Shown: positions 7,394 through 58,700, counted from the stretch's first letter. The stretch: DNA of 64,000 nucleotides from Diadema antillarum (GCF_040938485.1 NW_027271598.1:1612001-1676000), one strand, 5' to 3'. Notes: generated by a model from the letters alone, not told the origin. A program made the numbers and translations.

Positions 7394-10012
7394 TCACTTG
7401 TAAAGACCAGACAAAAAATCTTTGATGTAATCCCCAACTTCAATGGGCGAATCCTCCTGAATGAAATGCAGTCCAGCCGCATCAACAACTTTCTGATTGG
7501 GCCAGTGCTCAGTGGTTTTCTTGACGCTCGGGCCAAAGAGACCAGATAGGACATTGATGAACAACTTGGGGAGATTTGCAGACTCACTCAGCCAGGCGTA
7601 ATAAGCTGCAGCAGCTGCAATGACATCCTCGGGACCATCTCCAATGATGGGGATCTGCCTTGCAAACGTCAGGGTTGGGCGTCTGTCTTCTCCTGGGTTC
7701 TTGAAGGGCTCCACGTAGGCCTCCTTCTCCTCCTTCCTAAGCTCCCGCTTGATAAGGCGAGGCATGAGTACTTCCACAAAGGCATTCTTCTGGAGAACCA
7801 TCTCCTCCCCTTCGTCGGTGCGGAACACCTTGAAATCGGCATCGGGAAATTCCTCCCAACCGTGATAAGGAGCGACGAGGCTTTCAATGTGAACAAGGGC
7901 GTCCAGACGATCACGATGTTCATTGCTCCAATGGAAGCCCAGTATGGAGCCCCAGTCATGGCAAACGATGCTGATCTGTAGACAGAGAAAGCAGACTTAA
8001 ATGGAGCTACATGTAGTAGTTTTGGTTGAGACCTAACTTCAGGTTTCTAATATTTTTGGGTGAAATAATGAGAAATATCTAATGAAATATGAAAAGGCAT
8101 GTAATTCCGAGAGGGATTCAACGTTTATTTGATGGAAATCGGTTTTGAAATGGCTGAGATATCAACAACAAAAAAGAGCATTCCTAATAAAAAGCTGGAC
8201 CAATCTTTTATTCCTGGTCGGTTTGTTTTACTTTGTTTTTGGATGTTTCAGTCATTCCAAACCCGATTTTCATCAAATAAACTCTGAATTCCTCTGAAAA
8301 TGGTATGCTCTGTATACTATTTCGTAAGTGGTTTCTTGGTACCTCACAAAAAGTTGAAAGCCCAATTCTCATCTCCACCAACCCCTTTATTCAATTACAA
8401 CCTCAGTTAGCACATTTTAATTGCCCACCTTGCATTGCCAGTGGATTCTGTCTATTTTTCATCTGAAGTTGAAATAATGACGGACAACTTCGTTTACATT
8501 TTCATTAATTTTAACTCTTAACCCACAAGCACGAATATTCTCATTGTCCTAACACGAATAAGAGTTATTTCATACAATAAGGATAATTCTTTCAGTATTT
8601 TTTTCCACATATTTATCTGAATCAGATCTTTTTCTTTCCAGTTTCTTCATCACCTCTCTGGTTAAGGCACAATTTATTCTAGACCAGAAATAACTAGATT
8701 TGTTTTAGCTCATTTTTGCAAAACACTTCTCGGGAACAGTTCTCGAACAGTAAATATGCATATATGCAAATGTATGAGATCGCGATGTCATCACCTCAAA
8801 GTTTTCTTCTGCTTATGTGCAAAACAAACAACTTCAAAATAGCCCTACTTGATATTATATATACATTTCCATAATAATATGGTTATGAATGAGTTGATGA
8901 TTTCATGGCCTCAAAACTATAATAGTGATCAGTAAGAAATATAAATATAATTTTGAATAAAACAAGCTGGAATCAGTTCTTGTCTACAAAATATGTGACA
9001 AGTTTTGAGGCCATGAAATCATCAACTCATTCATTTCCATATTCATATTGACTATTCGAGAACTTTACTTGTGTAAATCTGTGAAAATTCAGAATACTGT
9101 GAATTTCCTAATTTCATTTCCTGTTGATCAAATTTTCAGTTGTGCCCTTAAAGCTTATCTATTTCTTTTCAGACATGCTATTCTGAGCTGTATTATGAAC
9201 TGGTAACTCAAAAAAGGCAAGAGGTATAATGAACTCACAAAAAGATGCATAAACAAGTAAGATCTCTAACATGTGTAGGGAGCTACTGTTTGTGATAACA
9301 CAAGAGTAGGAATTCACACAGTGAACGACAATTTTTTTAAACAAGATATATTAGGGTAAAGGATACAAAAATTAACATATTTATCGTAGTAAGTGCTTTG
9401 AGCCATGGTTTATGTATTACGATATAGTGCCGATTTTACATTATAATATACGTACTACTACAGTACTTACAATCTCAGCTTCGGGGAGGATCAACCGCCT
9501 AACTCACACATTAACGAAAGCTAACAAAGAACGAGAGAGAAAATATTATGGAAAAAACGAAACAGCATTTTGAAGAAAAAAAAATCACGTTAGTGCTCAC
9601 TGTTCATTTGTGTTTAAAAAAGTAACCAAACATTCCCTTAAGGAGGCCTACACACCTTTTTAGGCAGGTTAAGCTTGTCAAACCAGGCAGACAGGAATCT
9701 ATAGTGATCGACGAAGCGATACGACAGGCTTGCGAGCTTGTTGGATCTGCCCATGCCGATTAGGTCGGGAGCTAGACAACGAGCAATAGGCTGAACTTGA
9801 GGTACGACGTTCCTCCAGAGGTACGACGAGGTCGGGTTCCCGTGGAGAAACACGACTGCTCGATCACTATCGCGCTGATCGGGGTCGGAGTCGTAGTACG
9901 ACATCTGTTCTCCCAAGACGTCCAATTTTTTGCATTTCCCCCACCATTCGTCTGCTGTCACTATTGGTACTGTGGACTGTTGCTGTGCTGGCGCTCCGTC
10001 TGAGGAAGACAT
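7394..10012 (-). CDS. Renilla luciferase-like / haloalkane dehalogenase (coelenterazine 2-monooxygenase-like), copy A; exon 1 10012-9656, exon 2 7975-7394; 312 aa
   Basis: Motifs [32 protein letters not shown] (nucleophile Asp plus halide-binding Trp), VHIES (catalytic Glu) and [10 protein letters not shown] (catalytic His). Phase-0 GT-AG intron 7976-9655 (AAG|GTGTGT ... TCTACAG|ATC). No stops or frameshifts. Confidence 0.95.
8001..8390. mobile_element. Degenerate Kolobok-like (TTAA-flanked) element in the intron of genes A-C, same family as 50899-51280 in opposite orientation
   Basis: Similar to the reverse complement of 50899-51280 (e.g. TAGTTTTGGTTGAGACCTAA and CAAAAAGTTGAAAGCCCAATTCTCATCTCCAC). 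TTAA at 7997-8000. Confidence 0.55.
8666..9147. mobile_element. TTAA-flanked non-autonomous element (Kolobok-like) in the intron of genes A-C
   Basis: TTAA|GGCACAA ... TTGTGCCC|TTAA, with TTAA at 8662-8665 and 9148-9151. Confidence 0.5.
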
Positions 10013-27674: not shown

Positions 27675-30299
27675 TCACTTGTAAAGACCAGACAAAAAAT
27701 CTTTGATGTAATCCCCAACTTCAATGGGCGAATCCTCCTGAATGAAATGCAGTCCAGCCGCATCAACAACTTTCTGATTGGGCCAGTGCTCAGTGGTTTT
27801 CTTGACGCTCGGGCCAAAGAGACCAGATAGGACATTGATGAACAACTTGGGGAGATTTGCAGACTCACTCAGCCAGGCGTAATAAGCTGCAGCAGCTGCA
27901 ATGACATCCTCGGGACCATCTCCAATGATGGGGATCTGCCTTGCAAACGTCAGGGTTGGGCGTCTGTCTTCTCCTGGGTTCTTGAAGGGCTCCACGTAGG
28001 CCTCCTTCTCCTCCTTCCTAAGCTCCCGCTTGATAAGGCGAGGCATGAGTACTTCCACAAAGGCATTCTTCTGGAGAACCATCTCCTCCCCTTCGTCGGT
28101 GCGGAACACCTTGAAATCGGCATCGGGAAATTCCTCCCAACCGTGATAAGGAGCGACGAGGCTTTCAATGTGAACAAGGGCGTCCAGACGATCACGATGT
28201 TCATTGCTCCAATGGAAGCCCAGTATGGAGCCCCAGTCATGGCAAACGATGCTGATCTGTATACAGAGAAAGCAGACTTAAATGGAGCTACATGTAGTAG
28301 TTTTGGTTGAGACCTAACTTCAGGTTTCTAATATTTTTGGGTGAAATAATGAGAAATATCTAATGAATATGAAAAGGCATGTAATTCCGAGAGGGATTCA
28401 ACGTTTATTTGATGGAAATCGGTTTTGAAATGGCTGAGATATCAACAACAAAAAAGAGCATTCCTAATAAAAAGCTGGACCAATCTTTTATTCCTGGTCG
28501 GTTTGTTTTACTTTGTTTTTGGATGTTTCAGTCATTCCAAACCCGATTTTCATCAAATAAACTCTGAATTCCTCTGAAAATGGTATGCTCTGTATACTAT
28601 TTCGTAAGTGGTTTCTTGGTACCTCACAAAAAGTTGAAAGCCCAATTCTCATCTCCACCAACCCCTTTATTCAATTACAACCTCAGTTAGCACATTTTAA
28701 TTGCCCACCTTGCATTGCCAGTGGATTCTGTCTATTTTTCATCTGAAGTTGAAATAATGACGGACAACTTCGTTTACATTTTCATTAATTTTAACTCTTA
28801 ACCCACAAGCACGAATATTCTCATTGTCCTAACACGAATAAGAGTTATTTCATACAATAAGGATAATTCTTTCAGTATTTTTTTCCACATAATTATTTAT
28901 CTGAATCAGATCTTTTTCTTTCCCGTTTCTTCATCACCTCTCTGGTTAAGGCACAATTTATTCTAGACCAGAAATAACTAGATTTGTTTTAGCTCATTTT
29001 TGCAAAACACTTCTCGGGAACAGTTCTCGAACAGTAAATATGCATATATGCAAATGTATGAGATCGCGATGTCATCACCTCAAAGTTTTCTTCTGCTTAT
29101 GTGCAAAACAAACAACTTCAAAATAGCCCTACTTGATATTATATATACATTTCCATAAAAATATGGTTATGAATGAGTTGATGATTTCATGGCCTCAAAA
29201 CTATAATAGTGATCAGTAAGAAATATAAATATAATTTTGAATAAAACAAGCTGGAATCAGTTCTTGTCTACAAAATATGTGACAAGTTTTGAGGCCATGA
29301 AATCATCAACTCATTCATTTCCATATTCATATTGACTATTCGAGAACTTTACTTGTGTAAATCTGTGAAAATTCAGAATACTGTGAATTTCCTAATTTCA
29401 TTTCCTGTTGATCAAATTTTCAGTTGTGCCCTTAAAGCTTATCTATTTCTTTTCAGACATGCTATTCTGAGCTGTATTATGAACTGGTAACTCAAAAAGG
29501 GCAAGAGGTATAATGAACTCACAAAAAGATGCATAAACAAGTAAGATCTCTAACATGTGTAGGGAGCTACTGTTTGTGATAACACAAGAGTAGGAATTCA
29601 CACAGTGAACGACAATTTTTTTTAAACAAGATATATTAGGGTAAAGGATACAAAAATTAACATATTTATCGTAGTAAGTGCTTTGAGCCATGGTTTATGT
29701 ATTACGATATAGTGCCGATTTTACATTATAATATACGTACTACTACAGTACTTACAATCTCAGCTTCGGGGAGGATCAACCGCCTAACTCACACATTAAC
29801 GAAAGCTAACAAAGAACGAGAGAGAAAATATTATGGAAAAAACGAAACAGCATTTTGAAGAAAAAAAAAAATCACGTTAGTGCTCACTGTTCATTTGTGT
29901 TTAAAAAAGTAACCAAACATTCCCTTAAGGAGGCCTACACACCTTTTTAGGCAGATTAAGCTTGTCAAACCAGGCAGACAGGAATCTATAGTGATCGACG
30001 AAGCGATACGACAGGCTTGCGAGCTTGTTGGATCTGCCCATGCCGATTAGGTCGGGAGCTAGACAACGAGCAATAGGCTGAACTTGAGGTACGACGTTCC
30101 TCCAGAGGTACGACGAGGTCGGGTTCCCGTGGAGAAACACGACTGCTCGATCACTATCGCGCTGATCGGGGTCGGAGTCGTAGTACGACATCTGTTCTCC
30201 CAAGACGTCCAATTTTTTGCATTTCCCCCACCATTCGTCTGCTGTCACTATTGGTACTGTGGACTGTTGCTGTGCTGGCGCTCCGTCTGAGGAAGACAT
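27675..30299 (-). CDS. Renilla luciferase-like / haloalkane dehalogenase, copy B; exon 1 30299-29943, exon 2 28256-27675; 312 aa
   Basis: Same motifs and GT-AG intron as copy A. No amino-acid difference seen; one synonymous AAC>AAT change in exon 1. Confidence 0.95.
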
Positions 30300-40706: not shown

Positions 40707-43327
40707 TCACTTGTAAAGACCAGACAAAAAATCTTTGATGTAATCCCCAACTTCAATGGGCGAATCCTCCTGAATGAAATGCAGTCCAGCCGCATCAACA
40801 ACTTTCTGATTGGGCCAGTGCTCAGTGGTTTTCTTGACGCTCGGGCCAAAGAGACCAGATAGGACATTGATGAACAACTTGGGGAGATTTGCAGACTCAC
40901 TCAGCCAGGCGTAATAAGCTGCAGCAGCTGCAATGACATCCTCGGGACCATCTCCAATGATGGGGATCTGCCTTGCAAACGTCAGGGTTGGGCGTCTGTC
41001 TTCTCCTGGGTTCTTGAAGGGCTCCACGTAGGCCTCCTTCTCCTCCTTCCTAAGCTCCCGCTTGATAAGGCGAGGCATGAGTACTTCCACAAAGGCATTC
41101 TTCTGGAGAACCATCTCCTCCCCTTCGTCGGTGCGGAACACCTTGAAATCGGCATCGGGAAATTCCTCCCAACCGTGATAAGGAGCGACGAGGCTTTCAA
41201 TGTGAACAAGGGCGTCCAGACGATCACGATGTTCATTGCTCCAATGGAAGCCCAGTATGGAGCCCCAGTCATGGCAAACGATGCTGATCTGTAGACAGAG
41301 AAAGCAGACTTAAATGGAGCTACATGTAGTAGTTTTGGTTGAGACCTAACTTCAGGTTTCTAATATTTTGGGGTGAAATAATGAGAAATATCTAATGAAA
41401 TATGAAAGGGGCATGTAATTCCGAGAGGGATTCAACGTTTATTTGATGGAAATCGGTTTTGAAATGGCTGAGATATCAACAACAAAAAAGAGCATTCCTA
41501 ATAAAAAGCTGGACCAATCTTTTATTCCTGGTCGGTTTGTTTTACTTTGCTTTTGGATGTTTCAGTCATTCCAAACCCGATTTTCATCAAATAAACTCTG
41601 AATTCCTCTGAAAATGGTATGCTCTGTATACTATTTCGTAAGTGGTTTCTTGGTACCTCACAAAAAGTTGAAAGCCCAATTCTCATCTCCACCAACCCCT
41701 TTATTCAATTACAACCTCAGTTAGCACATTTTAATTGCCCACCGTGCATTGCCAGTGGATTCTGTCTATTTTTCATCTGAAGTTGAAATAATGACGGACA
41801 ACTTCGTTTACATTTTCATTAATTTTAACTCTTAACCCACAAGCACGAATATTCACATTGTCCTAACACGAATAAGAGTTATTTCATACAATAAGGATAA
41901 TTCTTTTAGTATTTTTTTCCACATATTTATCTGAATCAGATCTTTTTCTTTCCAGTTTCTTCATCACCTCTCTGGTTAAGGCACAATTTATTCTAGACCA
42001 GAAATAACTAGATTTGTTTTAGCTCATTTTTGCAAAACACTTCTCGGGAACAGTTCTCGAACAGTAAATATGCATATATGCAAATGTATGAGATCGCGAT
42101 GTCATCACCTCAAAGTTTTCTTCTGCTTATGTGCAAAACAAACAACTTCAAAATAGCCCTACTTGATATTATATATACATTTCCATAATAATATGGTTAT
42201 GAATGAGTTGATGATTTCATGGCCTCAAAACTATAATAGTGATCAGTAAGAAATATAAATATAATTTTGAATAAAACAAGCTGGAATCAGTTCTTGTCTA
42301 CAAAATATGTGACAAGTTTTGAGGCCATGAAATCATCAACTCATTCATTTCCATATTCATATTGACTATTCGAGAACTTTACTTGTGTAAATCTGTGAAA
42401 ATTCAGAATACTGTGAATTTCCTAATTTCATTTCCTGTTGATCAAATTTTCAGTTGTGCCCTTAAAGCTTATCTATTTCTTTTCAGACATGCTATTCTGA
42501 GCTGTATTATGAACTGGTAACTCAAAAAGGGCAAGAGGTATACTGAACTCACAAAAAGATGCATAAACAAGTAAGATCTCTAACATGTGTAGGGAGCTAC
42601 TGTTTGTGATAACACAAGAGTAGGAATTCACACAGTGAACGACAATTTTTTTTAAACAAGATATATTAGGGTAAAGGATACAAAAATTAACATATTTATC
42701 GTAGTAAGTGCTTTGAGCCATGGTTTATGTATTACGATATAGTGCCGATTTTACATTATAATATACGTACTACTACAGTACTTACAATCTCAGCTTCGGG
42801 GAGGATCAACCGCCTAACTCACACATTAACGAAAGCTAACAAAGAACGAGAGAGAAAATATTATGGAAAAAACGAAACAGCATTTTGAAGAAAAAAAAAT
42901 CACGTTAGTGCTCACTGTTCATTTGTGTTTAAAAAAGTAACCAAACATTCCCTTAAGGAGGCCTACACACCTTTTTAGGCAGGTTAAGCTTGTCAAACCA
43001 GGCAGACAGGAATCTATAGTGATCGACGAAGCGATACGACAGGCTTGCGAGCTTGTTGGATCTGCCCATGCCGATTAGGTCGGGAGCTAGACAACGAGCA
43101 ATAGGCTGAACTTGAGGTACGACGTTCCTCCAGAGGTACGACGAGGTCGGGTTCCCGTGGAGAAACACGACTGCTCGATCACTATCGCGCTGATCGGGGT
43201 CGGAGTCGTAGTACGACATCTGTTCTCCCAAGACGTCCAATTTTTTGCATTTCCCCCACCATTCGTCTGCTGTCACTATTGGTACTGTGGACTGTTGCTG
43301 TGCTGGCGCTCCGTCTGAGGAAGACAT
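40707..43327 (-). CDS. Renilla luciferase-like / haloalkane dehalogenase, copy C; exon 1 43327-42971, exon 2 41288-40707; 312 aa
   Basis: Same motifs and GT-AG intron as copy A. No amino-acid difference seen. Confidence 0.95.
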
Positions 43328-46592: not shown

Positions 46593-47029
46593 CTGGTTGG
46601 CATCCTGCAAAGCAGTATGTGCGCAGTGTGTACTCAGAATATCCGAACGGCAAAAAGAGTCGCTACAATGTTGCACAATGTGATGTAGAATTTACACCTT
46701 TGTACCTTACGCTTCGTTATATCAAAGCTAGATCATTGATTTTGCAGTGTTGCTTTACATATTTATAGTCTATATAAAAATGTCTTGCATTGCCAATAAA
46801 AAGACTTGACCTTTATGGGCTAATTCCTAACTTTTCCATGTATATAATACACACACACAAACAAACACTCACAATTAGGGGATGCTCTAAAGTGCAGATT
46901 TTGGACATCCTTCCCCCGCTTGGTCACTTCGACGCCACCTCGCTGGTTATACCTCCCCCAGTCATGAACATAAACCGACACCCTTGACTACCAGTGGCGG
47001 ATCCAGGGGGGGGGGGGGGTGCACCGGGC

Positions 47030-48200
47030 GTCCCCCCCCCCCCTCACAATTTCCAAAGCGAAAAAATATAGCTTCAAATGGCAGTTTTTGTCCGCTCGCT
47101 CGCATTTAGTCGTATAATGCCATTGAAGTTGCTGCCAGTAATTGCCGGCAGTTGCACCCGGTGCGCCCCCCCCCCCCCCTCAATTTCCAAAGCAAAAAAA
47201 TATAACTACAAACGGCAGTTTGGGGACTGTAAAATAACACAATTTTCAAGCTCGCTCGCTACCGCTCTCGCATTTAAATTCTCCTGATATTGCTGCCAGT
47301 AATTGCCAGCAGTTGCGCCCGGTGCGCCCCCCCCCCCTTAATTTCGAAAGCAAAAAAAGACATAGCTTCAAACGGCAGTTTTTGGACTGTAAAATGTCAA
47401 AATTTTCGAGCTCGCTCGCATTTCAAATCTTTATGCAATTCTTCTGATGTTACTGGCAGTAAATGTCAGCAGTTGCGCCCGGTGCGCCCCCCCCCCTTAA
47501 TTTCCAAAGCGAAAAAATATAGCTACAAACGGCATTTTTTTTTACTGTAAAATGTCAAAATTTTCAAGCTCGCTCTCTTCGCTCGCTCGCATTTAATCGT
47601 TTTGCAATTCACCTGATGTTGCTGCCAGTAATTGCCAGCAGTTCCGCCCGGTGCGCCCCCCCCCCCTTAATTTCCAAAGCGAAAAGATATGGCTAAGAAC
47701 GGCAGTTTTTGGACTGTGAAATGTAAGATTTTCAAGCTCGCTCGCTCGCATTAATAATAATCGTTATGCTCTCCTGATATTGCTGCCAGTAATTGCCAGC
47801 AGTTGCGGTCGATGCGGCCCCCCCCCCTTAAATTCCAAAGCGAAAATATATAGCTAAAAACGTCATTTTTTTTTTTTTTACTGTGATGTGTTAAAATTTT
47901 CCAGCTCGCTCGCTACGCTCGCTCGCATTTAATTGTTATGCCATTCTCCTGATGTTGCTGCCAGTTATTGCCGGCAGTTGCGCCCGGTGCGCCCCCCTTT
48001 ATTTCCAAAGCGAAAAAAATATGTCTCCAAATGGCAGTTTTGGGACTGTAAAATGTCAAACTTTTCAAGCTCGCTCTCTTCGCTCGCTCGCATTTAATTG
48101 TTATGCCATTCACCCGATGTTGCTGCCAGTAATTACCAGCAGTTGCACCCGGTGCGCCCCCCCCCCCCCTAATTTCCAAAGCAAAAAAAAAAAAAAAAAA
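47030..48200. repeat. ~165-bp minisatellite, about 7 units
   Basis: Recurring GCAGTTGCGCCCGGTGCGCCCCCC anchors at ~47150, 47310, 47470, 47640, 47800, 47975 and 48140, with homologous sequence between them. Confidence 0.85.
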
Positions 48201-49014
48201 TGACTGTTTCAAGTCGATAAAACATGCAAAAAACTTGCATCAAATTATTTACTATTTACAACATCAAAATGCAAAAAGTGCTCACCGTGGGAGGGGGACA
48301 CCCACATCCTCCCACTAGCTCACTCTTATCGCTCTTGCTTGGCCGCGTTCATGATATTCAGTGTAAATATTAAAACAGGAAGTTTATTTGGATGATACTA
48401 TTTTACGGGCAAATTGTTCATTAATAATCTACATCAAAATTTACTGCTACCTTAAACAAGTGGGACTGTTTCAAGTCGATAAAACAAGCAAAACATGCAT
48501 CAAATTGCACCATTTACAACATCAAAATGCAATTTCAGTTCTAAGAGTGGGAGGAGGGGGGGGGGGACAACAGGTACTTCTACATCCTCCTCCTCCCCCC
48601 CCCCCCCCCCAAAGATAAAATCCTAGCTACGCCGGGGTGCCCTTTCCCCGCTTGGTTTCCCTAAAAAAACAGTAAAAGTCTAGGGATTGAGAGCTTCCTA
48701 TCATATTCCAAATGTCTGTCCAAAAAATCTCGTTACATTTTAGTGTCAAAACGCACCCCCCTTGAAAAAAAGCTGGTGACGCCCCTGTTATTGCACTGCT
48801 AAGCAACGAAACTCAAGTAGGTAACAGATATGAACAATTCTTCAGTGGACCAACAATAAAAGGAAACCGACTGACACTTTCATGGAAGATCTACGCAAAT
48901 AAAATATTCGATCTCAATGAAACCCTGGACCCAAATATTTTCATGAAGGGCACACGGGAAAAACGCGTACCTTTCCGTCGTATACCATCATTTTCTTGTA
49001 GAAACCATGGTGTA

Positions 49015-51726: not shown

Positions 51727-54015
51727 TTACTTGTACAGTTCCGTAAGGAATGTCTTTATGTAATCCCCGATTTCTATCGGGGAATCCTCTTGAACGAAGT
51801 GCAACCCTTCGCATTCTACTATCTTTTGATTCGGCCACTCTTGGACCATCTTCTCGAAGACCGGGCTCAGCACGCCCGGCTTGACGCTGATGTAGAGCTT
51901 AGGTAGATCGGCTGACTTCGTCTTGAACCAGTCGGCGTAGGCAGCCACGATGGCGATCATATCGTCCGGTCCATCGCCGACGACGGGAATCAACCTTGGC
52001 CAGGTGAGCGTCGGTTGCCTGTCGTCCGGATCCCTGAATGGTCCCCGGTAGGCCTCCATCTCCTCCTCGCTCATCTTGCGCATGACGCCGAGTGGTAAGA
52101 ACTGCTCCACGAACACGTTTCCCTCTCGGATAAGTTTCTCCCCAGCCACGCCAGCCCGAAGCGCCTGGAGTGGTTCTCGCCCGATGTCAGGGAAAGTATC
52201 CCAACCGGGAATGGGACCCACGAAACTCTCCATGTGGACCAGGCCTTCCATGCGATCTCCGTGTTCGCTGGACCAGTGTAGTCCTAGTCCGGAACCCCAG
52301 TCATGGCACACAATGCTAACCTGTGGGAAGAAAGAATGAATTGAATATCGAGTATTTTTTACATTACATTGCAGTGAAACGAAATCCACTGTACTATAGC
52401 GTCAATGTGTAGAGCTTCTTTAAACGAACTCCCACCCTCCCTCATTATCATGATGTATCTTCTATATAACACGAGAGAAAACTAATACACGCAAGAAAAA
52501 TCCAAACAAAAAGTGACTTACAGGCCAAAGAGATTAAAGTTATTGTAAAAGCAAACCACATGTATTGACTAAAGACATGAATAGTTACCGTCTGTATAAA
52601 CTGCGTCATTATGTACATAAACGTTTTGAAAACATCTCACAGAGGTAACTGTCATTTTGCATCATGTCACGTGATCGGGAGTGTTAATTCTGGCGCAAGT
52701 TGCTGGGATCAAATTTTAACATGACTGGAGGTAGGCCTACATCAAGGATCTAAATGTTCATTGAATCCCCTGAAGCAAAGCAAGTCTCTGTACTCATAGG
52801 TGCTATAACGTAAATCGAAGAAGTAACGTCGCACTCACAGTCATGATAATTTTCTCTGCTTGTACGTCCTTGATAGGACATACTGCATGAGAATTGTGTG
52901 AAAGGGGCATCCATTTTCTGTAGATATTCATTACTTTCTCAAGAGCACCAGATATACCATCATTAAAGCGAAATCTGAATTCGGAGTTAGAGAGCGAAGT
53001 TCTTAAATCAACAGGTCATCTACTGAGACGTCCTAGGTTCTTCATTATAGACTGAAGTATTCAGGCCTATCGATTATAATACTATGGGCGAGCTCGTTTC
53101 GTATGTAGCAATTTCCTTCAGTGGCCTTCATTACGCCGGCTTCTTATTCGAAAAAAAAACACGAATACCCAGCATTTCATAACAATGTACATCACACCAT
53201 TACTACATGCACTACTACTTCTACTATCACTACTACTACTTTAACTACTACTACTACAACTACCTCTACTACTACAAGTGCTACTACCTCTGTATTAGTA
53301 TAATCTTCTCCCGTTTTTCTATTTTCATTGTAACTATTCCCTCTCCTACTAATATTGCGATTGCAAGTAACTGGCATTAGTTCTTGCTTTGTTAATGGAT
53401 ATCATTATAACCACCACATTATAGTGTGAACGATCAAAACAAAAAAAGTTAGACACAGAAATATACAGATATAGATGCAGAAAAAGAGTGAAAAGGAGAA
53501 ATAATGGCAATAAGGACAAAGAAAGCTTTCTATCTCTTTGCTTTTTACCGATTATTTCTTGTCGAGATGATAGGAATAAATCGAAAGTTTTCTGCAGCTT
53601 AAATCACCTTCGCAGGAAGACTGACTGCGTCAAACCATGCTGAGAGGTAGCGGTAGTGATCCAGAAAGTGGTAAGCCTTGTTGGCAAGCTTGCTGGATCG
53701 CCCGTGCCCGACTAGGTCTGGAGCGAGGCAGCGAGCAACGGGCTCGACCCGGGGAATCACGTTCCTCCAGAGGTACGACGAGGTCGGGTTCCCATGCAGG
53801 AAGACCACAGCGTGATCGCTGCCGCGTTGCTCGGGGTCCGAGTCGTAGTACGACATCGTCTCCCCCAGCACGTTGACCTTGCCGCATTTCTCCCACCATT
53901 GTGACGCCGTAATCAACGGTATCGTCGACTGGCTCCGGCGAGTCCCAACGACGAAGCTGACTGGACGTGATATGAGAAAGAGTCGGCCGCATGTGTTCCT
54001 TAAAAGGCATGCCAT
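51727..54015 (-). CDS. Divergent Renilla luciferase-like / haloalkane dehalogenase paralogue D; exon 1 54015-53608, exon 2 52320-51727; 333 aa with N-terminal extension
   Basis: Motifs [28 protein letters not shown] and GLHFVQEDSP. Phase-0 GT-AG intron (AAG|GTGATT ... CCCACAG|GTT) at the same position as in A-C. The first ATG is at 54015; the ORF track start at 54090 is a TTG. Confidence 0.93.
53195..53300. repeat. Imperfect (ACT)n microsatellite in the intron of gene D
   Basis: Run of ACT/CTA triplets with interruptions. Confidence 0.8.
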
Positions 54016-54644
54016 CTTGTGGTCACTTGTTGAAATGTCCACTCTATCTATCCTCTCAAGGTTTGATACGTCTCGGCGAGATTCCTGCAATATTTCTATG
54101 TATGATTTTCAATCGTTGTGTGTCAAAACCTTTATTCATGCCTCTCTGTGCAAATTGACATAAACTAGACTTTGGTCTTTGATACAGTGGGCGGTATATA
54201 CAGACGACATGATTACGATCGTCCTCTGAAAGTGATGGCGCTCTTCACTTCCCTTTCATCATATGGCAGTAACGTACATACGTTAAATTTTGTGTCCTAC
54301 TTCACAACTTCACGCAGTTCATGATGGAGAAGATCAGATTCAACAAATTACTACATCGTGTTTCTAAGCCCACACCTCACTATAACTTTATGTGAGCACA
54401 AAGAACGGCCATGATACATTAGCAACTATGAAGAACATGAAGAAGATTTTAAAGAGAAAAATAAAACCAGGGTTAAAAAGAAAAAAAAATATGCATGAAC
54501 TATTTTCCGAGAAGGGCTATTGTGATGCTGCAGGATCCCAGTTGATTGGGAGCTAGAGTAGTTGTTTGTGGTGATCACGTGGGAATTACAGTCAGAGCTC
54601 GCAATCTGTATGAACTAAATCATTACACGTAAAGCCATCCATTC

Positions 54645-55730: not shown

Positions 55731-58700
55731 ATGCCCCTTAAACGAATCAGTGTCACACCGAGCGATGAGCAAAAAGCGATTCCGAAATCGTACGTCATTG
55801 AAGACTCTATCAAGAAGCCGCCGACATTTGCCGACACGGTCATCGGCATCGGCGACAATGGATTCGATATATCGACCATAAGTGGAGCACAGGTGGCCAT
55901 GCCGATGTCGAGGGTGAGAGAGACCGCCCGTTACTCTGACCGCGTGTCATGGATGGGAGTGCTCTCGAAGTCGGCCTCGAGTTCCATCGGAGTGGCGGGA
56001 CTGAAGTACGCCGTCACTGCGCGGGAGAACTCTGGAAGGCGGTAGGACACCATGATTTCCGTTCTATCATGTAAAATGGTCGTACTCCCTCGTATAGGCC
56101 TACTCACCATTCAAAGCTCACTATTCTGATATGCACTTGCACATTTCGTAATAGATAAATGGTCAAATTGGTACATATCATGTAAAAGGGCAACTCATTT
56201 GGCTAGTCAATAATAATAATGATAATAATAATAATGATAATAATAATGATAATAATAATGACAATGATAATTATAGTAATGAAATAATAAATCCCATCTA
56301 AGTCCTTTAAGGATTTTTTTTCACCTACACAAGGTAGGTTTCAAAATTTTCCTCGTTTTATCCAAATATGGTATGATAGACTCAATAATAGATGTATCAA
56401 TAATGTGAATACATGACATAATATATGTGACTACGACGTATAAAAATAATTATGTATACACTGCAACACAGAGCATAGGGGTGTTATATACCATGCCTGT
56501 ATAGAACATAATCTGTTCAACAAAGGCAAACAAAATCATAGACGTGCATGAGGGAAGCTGATAATTGTCCTAGGTCTTTTCATCAGTGCTTACTTTTCTC
56601 TCCATATATATTGAACTTTTCATTTTGCCCCGCTTGAGTCAGCTGGATCTGGGCGATCATCCTCACAGCGGCAATGCTTATAGCCGCCGTGCAGATCATC
56701 CAACAGGTGCACTGCTTTTCCACCTACCCCAGGAGCGTCGACGTGGTGGTCGAAAACGTTGACGAACTCCCCTTCCCTACAGTCGCGGTGTGCAATTTCA
56801 ACAAATACAGGTTAGAATGAATGAACGAGTTTGAATTCAGTGTGCGTAAGTGTGTCTGTGTTTGACAGGGCTTTTAAACATTTGGCAGTGCAGGTTCGTG
56901 CTCTTTTTATCTTTTCGCTGCTTGCATCCATCTCTCATCCACAAACTGCCATCTGAACCTACTTTGGTCCTTTCAGATGAAGATAACTTAAAAAGAGACG
57001 GGGAAGAAAGCAAAGAAGGACAAGAAGGTGACAGGAAGAAAATGCCCAATGTTGGGAGGAGAGCGAAGTGATTAGAAGAACAAGACGATGGAATAGAAAT
57101 GAAAGAGAAAACAAAGAATAATATAATTATTATAATATTGTAAAATCATATGCATGCAATGATGCCTTCCTGATGCATGTATAGTTTTCGTTTTGTTATG
57201 TTTTGCTCTGTTTTGTGTTGATTTGCCTTGTTTTCAGTTCTGAATAAATAATTATCTTTTATTACGAACGAGGCCCTAACATGTCAATGGCCTTTCCTTC
57301 CTCCTCCACACTTTGTATTGTATATGATTTCTTTGTTCTTTTGTCATCTTTCAAATGTTCATTCCTTTTACTGAATTTATGCAAGCATTGAAAATAAATT
57401 AATAGAAAAAAAGGAAAAAAGGGCGACGAAGAAGAATGTTATAGTTGATAGAAGTTTGCTCGAATAACAAATTCAAATCTTTGTTGTCTTTCAGTTTCAC
57501 AGTTTAGATCAATTCTTGTTCGTCTTCGTTAAAAAGAAAAAAAAAGTTTGAAGACAGTCACATATTCGTATTACAAAGTTGTTTTTTTAATTTGAACAAA
57601 TCTACGTAATAAAAAGAAACCGAAGTTTTCAATTTCTTTTTTCATTCTGCTGACTTCCGCGTATGTCGACAGATTTTATCCGCGTCATGCGTGCTTGTCG
57701 CCTTTAATACGCAAGACTGTGTACCTGCCGTCCTTCAAATAAGCATTAAACCTGTTATAAAGGCACCATTCCACTGACCATCGTAGGCTCAACTGACTCC
57801 CGAAATGCACAAATTTCGATTCCCCCATTAAAACTGATCCGACAAGCTCCAGAAACTATCATCATGGCTCACCGAGGATGAATCAAGGTAAACCGAGGGT
57901 GCCCCGGCGTAAACTCTACAAACTGGTTGGATGTCGGCTGGACACGCCTGATACAGTGCACTCCTAGTATAACGAACACGGTTATACCGAAATTTCGTTA
58001 TAACGAAGTAAAAGTTCAGGCCCCAAAATTATCACCATTTTAAAGTCTATGGCAATTAAAAAAAAACACTAATAACGAACATGGTAATAGCGAAATTTCG
58101 TTATAACTAAATCTTTTCGGAGCGCTATTGATAAAGGAAAACAAAAGAAACATGTTCCGATTTAACAAAAATGCGGATCGCTTACGTAAAAAAAAAAAAT
58201 AGCAAAAACAAACATTTACAGAGCGTCTGATTGGCGGATGCTTCAAATCTCTTCGTTCGCTCGGTGTGTCACGTATTGTTTCTGAGGTTACTATGATACG
58301 TCAATCCGAGATGAATTGATTACGAAAAACACAAATTCTGATCTACGTAGATGTTCGTTCATTTGTAAATGAAATACGTTTGTTATTACGAACGTTGTTG
58401 CGTTATATTCGTAAGGTTCTTTAATCCATCCTTGAAGTAAGGTTCTTTTTAAGAAGATTCGTTAATCCGAAAATTAAAGGAATTTTCGTTATTCCATAAT
58501 GTTCGTTAATCTAAGAGAGAGAGAGAAAGAGAAAAAAAAAAGGTGTATACATTAACAAAACTTATGAATTACGGACCTAATATCTTCTTCGAATAAGCGA
58601 ATCTTCGCCATGACGAACCTTTCTCATTCTTCGATTAACAAACTTTCGGACTAACAATCTTATTTTATTTTCAAAAATTAACCTTCTGAACAATGAACCT

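Follow-up and report, generated by a model that had tools for sequence, protein, structure and literature searches.

A constrained leader on a luciferase-like dehalogenase gene of Diadema antillarum, homologous to peroxisomal targeting leaders and possibly re-aimed to mitochondria

Within a 64,000-nucleotide stretch of the Diadema antillarum genome (GCF_040938485.1 NW_027271598.1:1612001-1676000; this whole stretch is the window, and positions are counted from its first letter), the gene designated paralogue D encodes a Renilla-luciferase-like haloalkane dehalogenase whose first 28 codons (53932..54015, minus strand) specify an N-terminal leader, MACLLRNTCGRLFLISRPVSFVVGTRRS. Comparative sequence evidence indicates that this leader is translated, that it is under purifying selection, and that it is homologous to an old leader of the animal family whose ancestral core is a canonical type 2 peroxisomal targeting signal (PTS2). 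The corresponding nonapeptide of D, RLFLISRPV (residues 11-19), is a degenerate version of that core. The leading guess, with a probability of about 0.42, is that the leader of D is a mitochondrial import signal, re-aimed from peroxisomes and cleaved near a possible R-2 site, RS|QS. The literature searched describes the animal luciferase-like dehalogenases as soluble enzymes and as a starting point from which luciferases evolved. A conserved leader that bears a canonical peroxisomal signal in many phyla gives a testable indication of the compartment in which these enzymes act, and hence of their substrate; tandem paralogues in which the signal is kept, degraded or lost give another.

The leader of D contains five arginines (R6, R11, R17, R26 and R27), five serines or threonines and no aspartate, glutamate or lysine, giving a net charge of +5 over 28 residues. 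An earlier, sequence-only reading of this DNA had drawn attention to the five arginines, to the lack of acidic residues and to the arginine that falls just before the start of homology, and the translation of 54015..53932 agrees. No homology of D to solved Renilla luciferase and dehalogenase structures starts before residue 28 (SQSTIP). The ATG at 54015 lies in a good start context, CACAAGATGG, and the flank in frame with it (54016..54111, minus strand) reads as non-coding, with an in-frame TGA at 54109-54111, 32 codons upstream, and no ATG between the two. In Diadema setosum, a 1-nucleotide indel breaks the reading frame in the 5' flank of the D orthologue.

The best database relative of D is that D. 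setosum orthologue, P0001, a protein of 332 residues whose exon 2 is 93% identical to that of D, and the NCBI model for it uses the same start. The sequence-only reading had named conservation of the extension in orthologues as a way of checking its proposal, and the first 33 residues of the two proteins are indeed identical, leader included. The extension amounts to more than a chance reading frame. Between the two species, codons 1-27 carry 5 synonymous changes and no non-synonymous one (synonymous proportion, pS, 0.23; non-synonymous proportion, pN, 0; P=0.0014 under neutrality), and codons 1-33 carry 7 and 0 (P=9e-5); overall identity is 95-96% in the exons, 85-90% in the flanks (90% in the upstream 200 bases) and 71% in the intron. 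P0001 stood in for full-length D in the alignment, the tree and the structure prediction. The AlphaFold2 model of P0001, made from a 32-sequence alignment, has a mean predicted local distance difference test score (pLDDT) of 90, with values of only 38, 47 and 57 for successive blocks of ten over residues 1-30; this segment is coil with no secondary structure, and the fold begins at about residue 36. The leader is accordingly predicted by the model to be disordered and to lie outside the alpha/beta-hydrolase fold.

These results bear directly on whether the gene model itself could be at fault, with transcripts that start downstream or use some other first exon, so that the leader would fall outside the protein. 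Such an error is very improbable. It would accommodate the facts that the sole RNA-seq run found (X1, labelled 'echinoderm metagenome') covers just a low-complexity tract in the intron of D, and that no D protein of D. antillarum turned up in the protein database. It is opposed by the 5/0 (7/0) pattern of synonymous and non-synonymous changes, by the identical start of the NCBI model for the D. setosum orthologue, and by an upstream frame that is both closed and not conserved. Furthermore, the next in-frame methionine of D, M54, is inside the fold, and every D product should therefore carry the leader. By the comparison of the two species, the stretch 53932-54015 is the true 5' end of the D coding sequence.

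The enzyme that follows the leader appears to be intact. D comprises two exons on the minus strand and encodes 333 residues. Exon 1 (53608..54015, 136 codons) carries the HGNP motif with the halide-stabilising Asn76 and ends at the donor AAG|GTGATT, the single intron (52321..53607) has GT..CAG splice sites, and exon 2 (51727..52320, 197 codons plus stop) begins at the acceptor CAG|GTT and supplies the nucleophile Asp143-Trp144, Glu167 and His310. The catalytic pentad (N76, D143, W144, E167, H310) is thus complete, and its columns are invariant or nearly so in alignment A1. When the exons were searched separately, the NCBIfam haloalkane dehalogenase model NF002938 matched exon 1 with 117 bits and exon 2 with 195 bits; this is an equivalog model, and the orthologue P0001 reaches 329.6 bits against a cut-off of 241, with the match running from residue 43 on. 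Pfam places Abhydrolase_1 in exon 1, and the family matches are Abhydrolase_1 and Abhydrolase_6. PDB matches of D include Renilla luciferase, ancestral dehalogenase-luciferases and bacterial haloalkane dehalogenases, with E values from 1.6e-51 to 3e-38. The earlier identification of D as a luciferase-like dehalogenase is borne out by the NF002938 and PDB matches and the intact pentad, and D is, judged by residues and profile matches, a catalytically intact enzyme of the HLD-II type.

The intron of D also contains the low-complexity tract mentioned above, at about 53190-53420, in which open reading frames (ORFs) read as Thr-rich or Val-rich repeats. Contigs of run X1 match the D locus only here (53229-53418), with 90-95% likeness. 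Because this is the sole part of the D locus that they match, and at that level, the tract is probably a dispersed repeat.

The origin of the leader becomes apparent when the animal family is considered as a whole. About 40 animal homologues were gathered, from echinoids, brittle stars, sea cucumber, starfish, crinoids, acorn worms, amphioxus, tunicates, octocoral and unnamed marine sequences, and most of them have a leader, of 20-46 residues. The leaders can be aligned over 28 animal homologues with a common R-[LVI] column, in which R11-L12 of D falls, and they share a conserved core, R-[LVI]-x5-[HQ]-[LAF], with a hydrophobic fifth residue. The nonapeptide that directs import into peroxisomes by the PTS2 route is [RK][LVI]x5[HQ][LAF], and relaxed variants of it exist (PMC7710942). 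A canonical PTS2, required to lie within the first 40 residues, was found in 13 of the 30 leaders that are at least 15 residues long, against 0.49 expected from shuffled sequences (maximum 3 in 2000 shuffles), and position 5 was always hydrophobic. Examples are RLQTVVGHL in Z, another gene of the same Diadema cluster (see below), RLQTVVGHF in Lytechinus P0121, RLQVVAKHF in Amphiura P0127, RVSILRSHL in Ptychodera P0139, RVSVMFGHL in Branchiostoma and RLNVLTSHL in Apostichopus P0015; the PTS2 of thiolase is RLQVVLGHL. Homologues from at least five animal phyla share the motif, and in several amphioxus and brittle-star leaders it is followed, at a distance of about 10-15 residues, by a cysteine, as is found where PTS2 leaders are processed. 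From this alignment, the leader of D is homologous to an old leader of the animal family with a canonical PTS2 as its ancestral core, which suggests that the organelle history of the family is peroxisomal.

The canonical signal has been kept in Z of two Diadema species and in Lytechinus P0121, suggesting that the PTS2 pathway is in use in echinoids. A search of G000 with the thiolase N-terminal domain returned exon-level matches that were internal exons or other thiolases, with no PTS2 motif visible, and the literature search found no paper joining PEX7 with Strongylocentrotus. Likewise, no paper was found that pairs PTS2 or peroxisomal targeting with the Renilla-luciferase-like dehalogenase family, and the family papers whose text was searched do not mention mitochondria, peroxisomes or a signal peptide. 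The leader is absent from Apostichopus P0145 and from the older S. purpuratus model P0122. This last model starts with MASRNQATIP, and the PTS2-bearing Lytechinus P0121 has an internal methionine at the equivalent place, just before ASRNQSTIP. A single gene might, by alternative starts, yield both an organellar and a cytosolic form.

Leader loss can be followed most closely among the neighbours of D. A whole-genome search revealed a cluster of eight genes, in the transcription order D, C, B and A (in the window) and then Y3, Y2, Y1 and Z (just outside it). Leaders are present on D, Y1-3 and Z and absent from A, B and C, as the sequence-only reading had recognised for the latter three, whose ATGs are at 10012 (A), 30299 (B) and 43327 (C). 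A look-up of P0123, the NCBI model of A-C, gave no gene with precisely that product in a collection that may omit records of the window's own genome. D is not an exception in the cluster: Y1-3, Z and most animal homologues have a homologous leader. The Y1-3 proteins start MMSIRAVSVLKSVAVIGRVHVGRLLSTQLPATGGVRARH|QSTIP, a basic sequence with no acidic residues, and Z starts MAEDAKNRLQTVVGHLQFGRL... At L013:3784-4251 (G000:C710, about 1,571,280-1,571,750), Z begins MAEDAKNRLQTVVGHL, with a canonical PTS2 nonapeptide of the form RLx5HL; the corresponding nonapeptide of P0002, the D. setosum orthologue of Z, is RLQTVVDHL.

The DNA of A-C is 91.6% identical to that of Y3, and this homology begins exactly at the junction of leader and mature enzyme; in front of it lie unrelated sequence and a new ATG. 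The replacement start of C, for example, occupies 43297..43327 (minus strand), with the ATG at 43327 and homology to Y3 from 43297, and the same arrangement is seen in A (about 9982-10012) and B (about 30269-30299). In the tree, A-C are sister to Y3 with support of 100/99. Taken together with the position of the homology start, this argues that the leaderless state is derived and the leader ancestral. By the same token, A-C lost the leader via a breakpoint rather than by decay. The paralogues of the cluster very probably differ in location, and to this extent the earlier suggestion of compartment-split paralogues stands; its polarity has to be reversed, with A-C the derived members, and the organelle involved is uncertain. 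Directly downstream of the D orthologue in D. setosum is a Y-type, leader-bearing gene encoding 359 residues (L016:18129-21882). The A-C array, which lies between D and Y3 in D. antillarum, may be specific to the lineage of that species or may have been lost in D. setosum.

The more difficult question is where the leader of D now leads. D groups in the tree with P0122 and P0003 of S. purpuratus and P0005 of Lytechinus (support 90/81), inside an echinoid clade supported at 100/99. The D nonapeptide RLFLISRPV fits a PTS2 at positions 1, 2 and 5 and departs from it at positions 8 and 9, which are proline and valine, so that it falls outside the PTS2 definition; the relaxed pattern is also unmatched. 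The nonapeptides of P0003 and P0005 are likewise degenerate (RLQTMLGHK and RLQTLFGYK), and both proteins have strongly amphipathic, Arg-rich segments just before R-x-QST, with moments of 0.76 and 0.81. In the lineage of D, P0003 and P0005, then, the aligned leaders indicate that the PTS2 consensus has been lost and an Arg-rich, acid-free leader kept.

On the leading reading of these changes, the leader of D would still act as an organellar import signal, its target would have shifted from peroxisomes to the mitochondrial matrix, and it would be removed near RS|QS, immediately before the mature enzyme begins with the conserved QSTIP. The strict retention of the leader in D suggests a function, because a leader that was dispensable in A-C was lost outright. 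Several features of D are those of a mitochondrial presequence. The leader is an N-terminal extension outside the mature fold, of a length within the 15-60 residue range (homology starts at residue 28-43), and it contains the phi-x-x-phi-phi element VSFVV. It is net positive, Arg-rich and acid-free, properties that are shared with several PTS2-bearing homologues and hence do not discriminate. The sequence R27-S28|Q29-S30 fits R-2 cleavage, and R-x-QST is kept in the echinoid paralogues, although this is a low-information motif that also occurs in PTS2-bearing P0121. A candidate R-10 site for the mitochondrial processing peptidase (MPP) plus octapeptidase, R11..S20, was rejected as a chance fit that would imply a presequence of 12 residues.

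Other observations count against a mitochondrial destination. The amphipathic moment of the D leader does not exceed chance: its maximum Eisenberg moment is 0.46 (11-residue window, 100 degrees), a value that 86-88% of shuffles equal or surpass. This is below the shuffle mean, with 73-88% of shuffles equalling or exceeding D over the tests at an 11-residue window and similar results at other windows and angles. This value is the lowest among the long leaders, though the hydrophobic-moment test is a crude one. Gly10, Pro18 and Gly24, along with the coil predicted by AlphaFold, point the same way. PTS2 leaders and mitochondrial presequences are alike in composition and can be confused (PMC7710942). 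Indeed, several clear PTS2-bearing homologues are as basic and as acid-free as D, so that composition alone does not discriminate between the two. Finally, complete identity over 33 residues between two species exceeds what presequences, which accept substitutions, usually show. The cleavable mitochondrial presequence proposed in the sequence-only reading has thus fared unevenly: the basic, acid-free and constrained leader outside the fold was confirmed, and the amphipathic moment did not rise above that of shuffled sequences.

Alternatively, D would still enter peroxisomes, the ancestral compartment of the family, either by a non-canonical PTS2 or in company with a paralogue that bears a PTS2, such as Z. 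The very strict conservation is more in keeping with a peptide bound by a receptor than with a loose presequence, and the leader is, after all, homologous to PTS2 leaders: R11-L12 falls in the conserved R-[LVI] column, and RLFLISRPV retains positions 1 and 2 as well as a hydrophobic residue at position 5. Relaxed PTS2 variants are known (PMC7710942), and Z and Lytechinus P0121 preserve the canonical form. The obstacle lies at the end of the nonapeptide, where position 8, a His or Gln that is among the four most conserved positions, is proline in D, position 9 is valine, and canonical and relaxed patterns alike go unmatched. A proline would also break the helix that a PTS2 forms on PEX7. Peroxisomal import of D is on this balance unlikely.

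The same broken consensus could mean that the leader no longer targets the protein at all. D would then be cytosolic, with a leader that is translated and conserved for some part in stability or the regulation of activity, for a protein contact, or as a propeptide. An unusually strict sequence constraint, a predicted disordered coil and the want of an amphipathic helix signal would all be expected of such a segment, and D sits on a long branch (0.41), suggesting a functional change. However, leaders that are not needed are simply absent from this family, as in A-C, Apostichopus P0145 and S. purpuratus P0122, and the composition of the D leader is typical of import signals; in addition, no such role was found for the family in the literature searched. 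A non-targeting leader is, like continued peroxisomal import, an unlikely outcome.

A secretory signal peptide or anchor is less probable again. It would be built from an n-region MACLLRNTCGR and an h-region LFLISRPVSFVV, with cleavage after VVG. Residues 12-23 have a Kyte-Doolittle mean of 1.88, and the residues at -1 and -3 of V-V-G|T are small enough to permit cleavage, but Arg17 and Pro18 interrupt the hydrophobic stretch, leaving PVSFVVGT as the longest uncharged run, so that the unbroken h-region of about 7-15 residues expected of a signal peptide is not found. Two arginines follow the putative cleavage site, and the homologous leaders of the relatives are of the PTS2 type, not secretory.

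If the mitochondrial interpretation of D is extended to the rest of the cluster, a broader and more tentative scheme emerges. In this scheme the animal family would be ancestrally peroxisomal by way of PTS2, from octocorals to amphioxus, and the Diadema cluster would have been split over three compartments by changes in the leader alone. It is possible, if somewhat doubtful, that Z, with its canonical RLQTVVGHL, goes to the peroxisome, that D and Y1-3 are directed to the mitochondrion by an Arg-rich, acid-free leader whose nonapeptide has degenerated, and that A-C, having lost the leader at the junction and gained a new ATG, stay in the cytosol. Were this true, the physiological substrate would be located in oxidative organelles, and leaderless luciferases such as that of Renilla would have come from a peroxisomal ancestor. 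For D alone the result is more modest, namely that the leader is real and constrained and that D is not exceptional; the PTS2 signal found across the family is the more notable finding.

The surroundings of the cluster are of some relevance to the start of D. A divergent neighbour gene begins about 1.7 kb upstream, and this leaves little room for a D promoter or for a further upstream coding exon. At its presumed start is an ORF (55731..56045, plus strand) that is collinear with D. setosum L016:7681-10000, where an amiloride-sensitive channel gene begins. A Pfam search of ORF 55731-56042 alone gave no match, and the assignment of 55731..56045 as exon 1 of the channel gene is inferred from the collinearity. 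In D. setosum the gene of the amiloride-sensitive channel family (L016:1-8244) is divergent from the D orthologue, and about 1.7 kb of intergenic DNA is common to D and this neighbour. The collinear, divergent channel gene beside D indicates that D is the terminal gene of the cluster. Between C and D, at 46960-48620, a series of short ORFs on both strands repeats motifs such as RGGGRTGRNCWQLLAA and PPPP(L)ISKAKK, by appearance a tandem or dispersed repeat. Two contigs carry near-identical copies of the entire cluster, at G000 C710:1,568,000-1,666,000 and C1011:1,669,000-1,771,000, and these are apparently unmerged haplotypes. C1011 has an extra exon pair near 1,719-1,722 kb, and copy number may differ between the haplotypes.

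Among known systems, the closest are the echinoid relatives, S. purpuratus P0003 and P0122 ('coelenterazine h 2-monooxygenase-like', DspA group) and Lytechinus P0005, which have the same HLD-II/RLuc fold and the same catalytic residues as D. The P0003 and P0005 leaders also share its R-x-QST[IL]P junction. D differs from these relatives in its shorter, non-amphipathic leader, in a more degenerate nonapeptide (RLFLISRPV as opposed to RLQTMLGHK) and in its long branch. DspA presumably corresponds to the short S. purpuratus model, and the published work on DspA and its relatives, within the literature searched, is confined to the enzyme, with no word of a leader. The luciferase of Renilla reniformis (PDB 2PSD and others) is homologous to D from residue 34 on (E about 3e-38) and has the same pentad positions but, unlike D, no leader. 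In the luciferase/dual-function family of Amphiura filiformis, paralogues P0127 and P0128 have leaders with a canonical or relaxed PTS2.

Compared with the PTS2 leaders of peroxisomal matrix enzymes such as 3-ketoacyl-CoA thiolase (RLx5HL), the nonapeptide of D has the same N-terminal place, within the first 40 residues, and the same fit at positions 1, 2 and 5, but has Pro-Val at positions 8 and 9 rather than His/Gln and Leu/Ala/Phe. With mitochondrial matrix presequences, which use the TOM20/TIM23 route and are cleaved by MPP, D shares a length of 20-40 residues, an Arg-rich and acid-free composition with Ser/Thr, an arginine at -2 of a candidate cleavage site and one phi-x-x-phi-phi element; it departs from them in a moment that does not exceed that of shuffles, in its helix-breaking glycines and proline, and in its unusually strict conservation. 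A further parallel is alanine:glyoxylate aminotransferase, for which mammals have repeatedly gained or lost an N-terminal presequence and so switched the enzyme between mitochondria and peroxisomes. In both cases one enzyme family would be partitioned among peroxisome, mitochondrion and cytosol by way of an N-terminal leader or start codon, an arrangement that for the Diadema genes is proposed from sequence. The aminotransferase relies on a C-terminal type 1 peroxisomal targeting signal (PTS1) and on alternative starts, whereas in Diadema the peroxisomal signal would be inside the leader itself and the switch would have been made between tandem paralogues.

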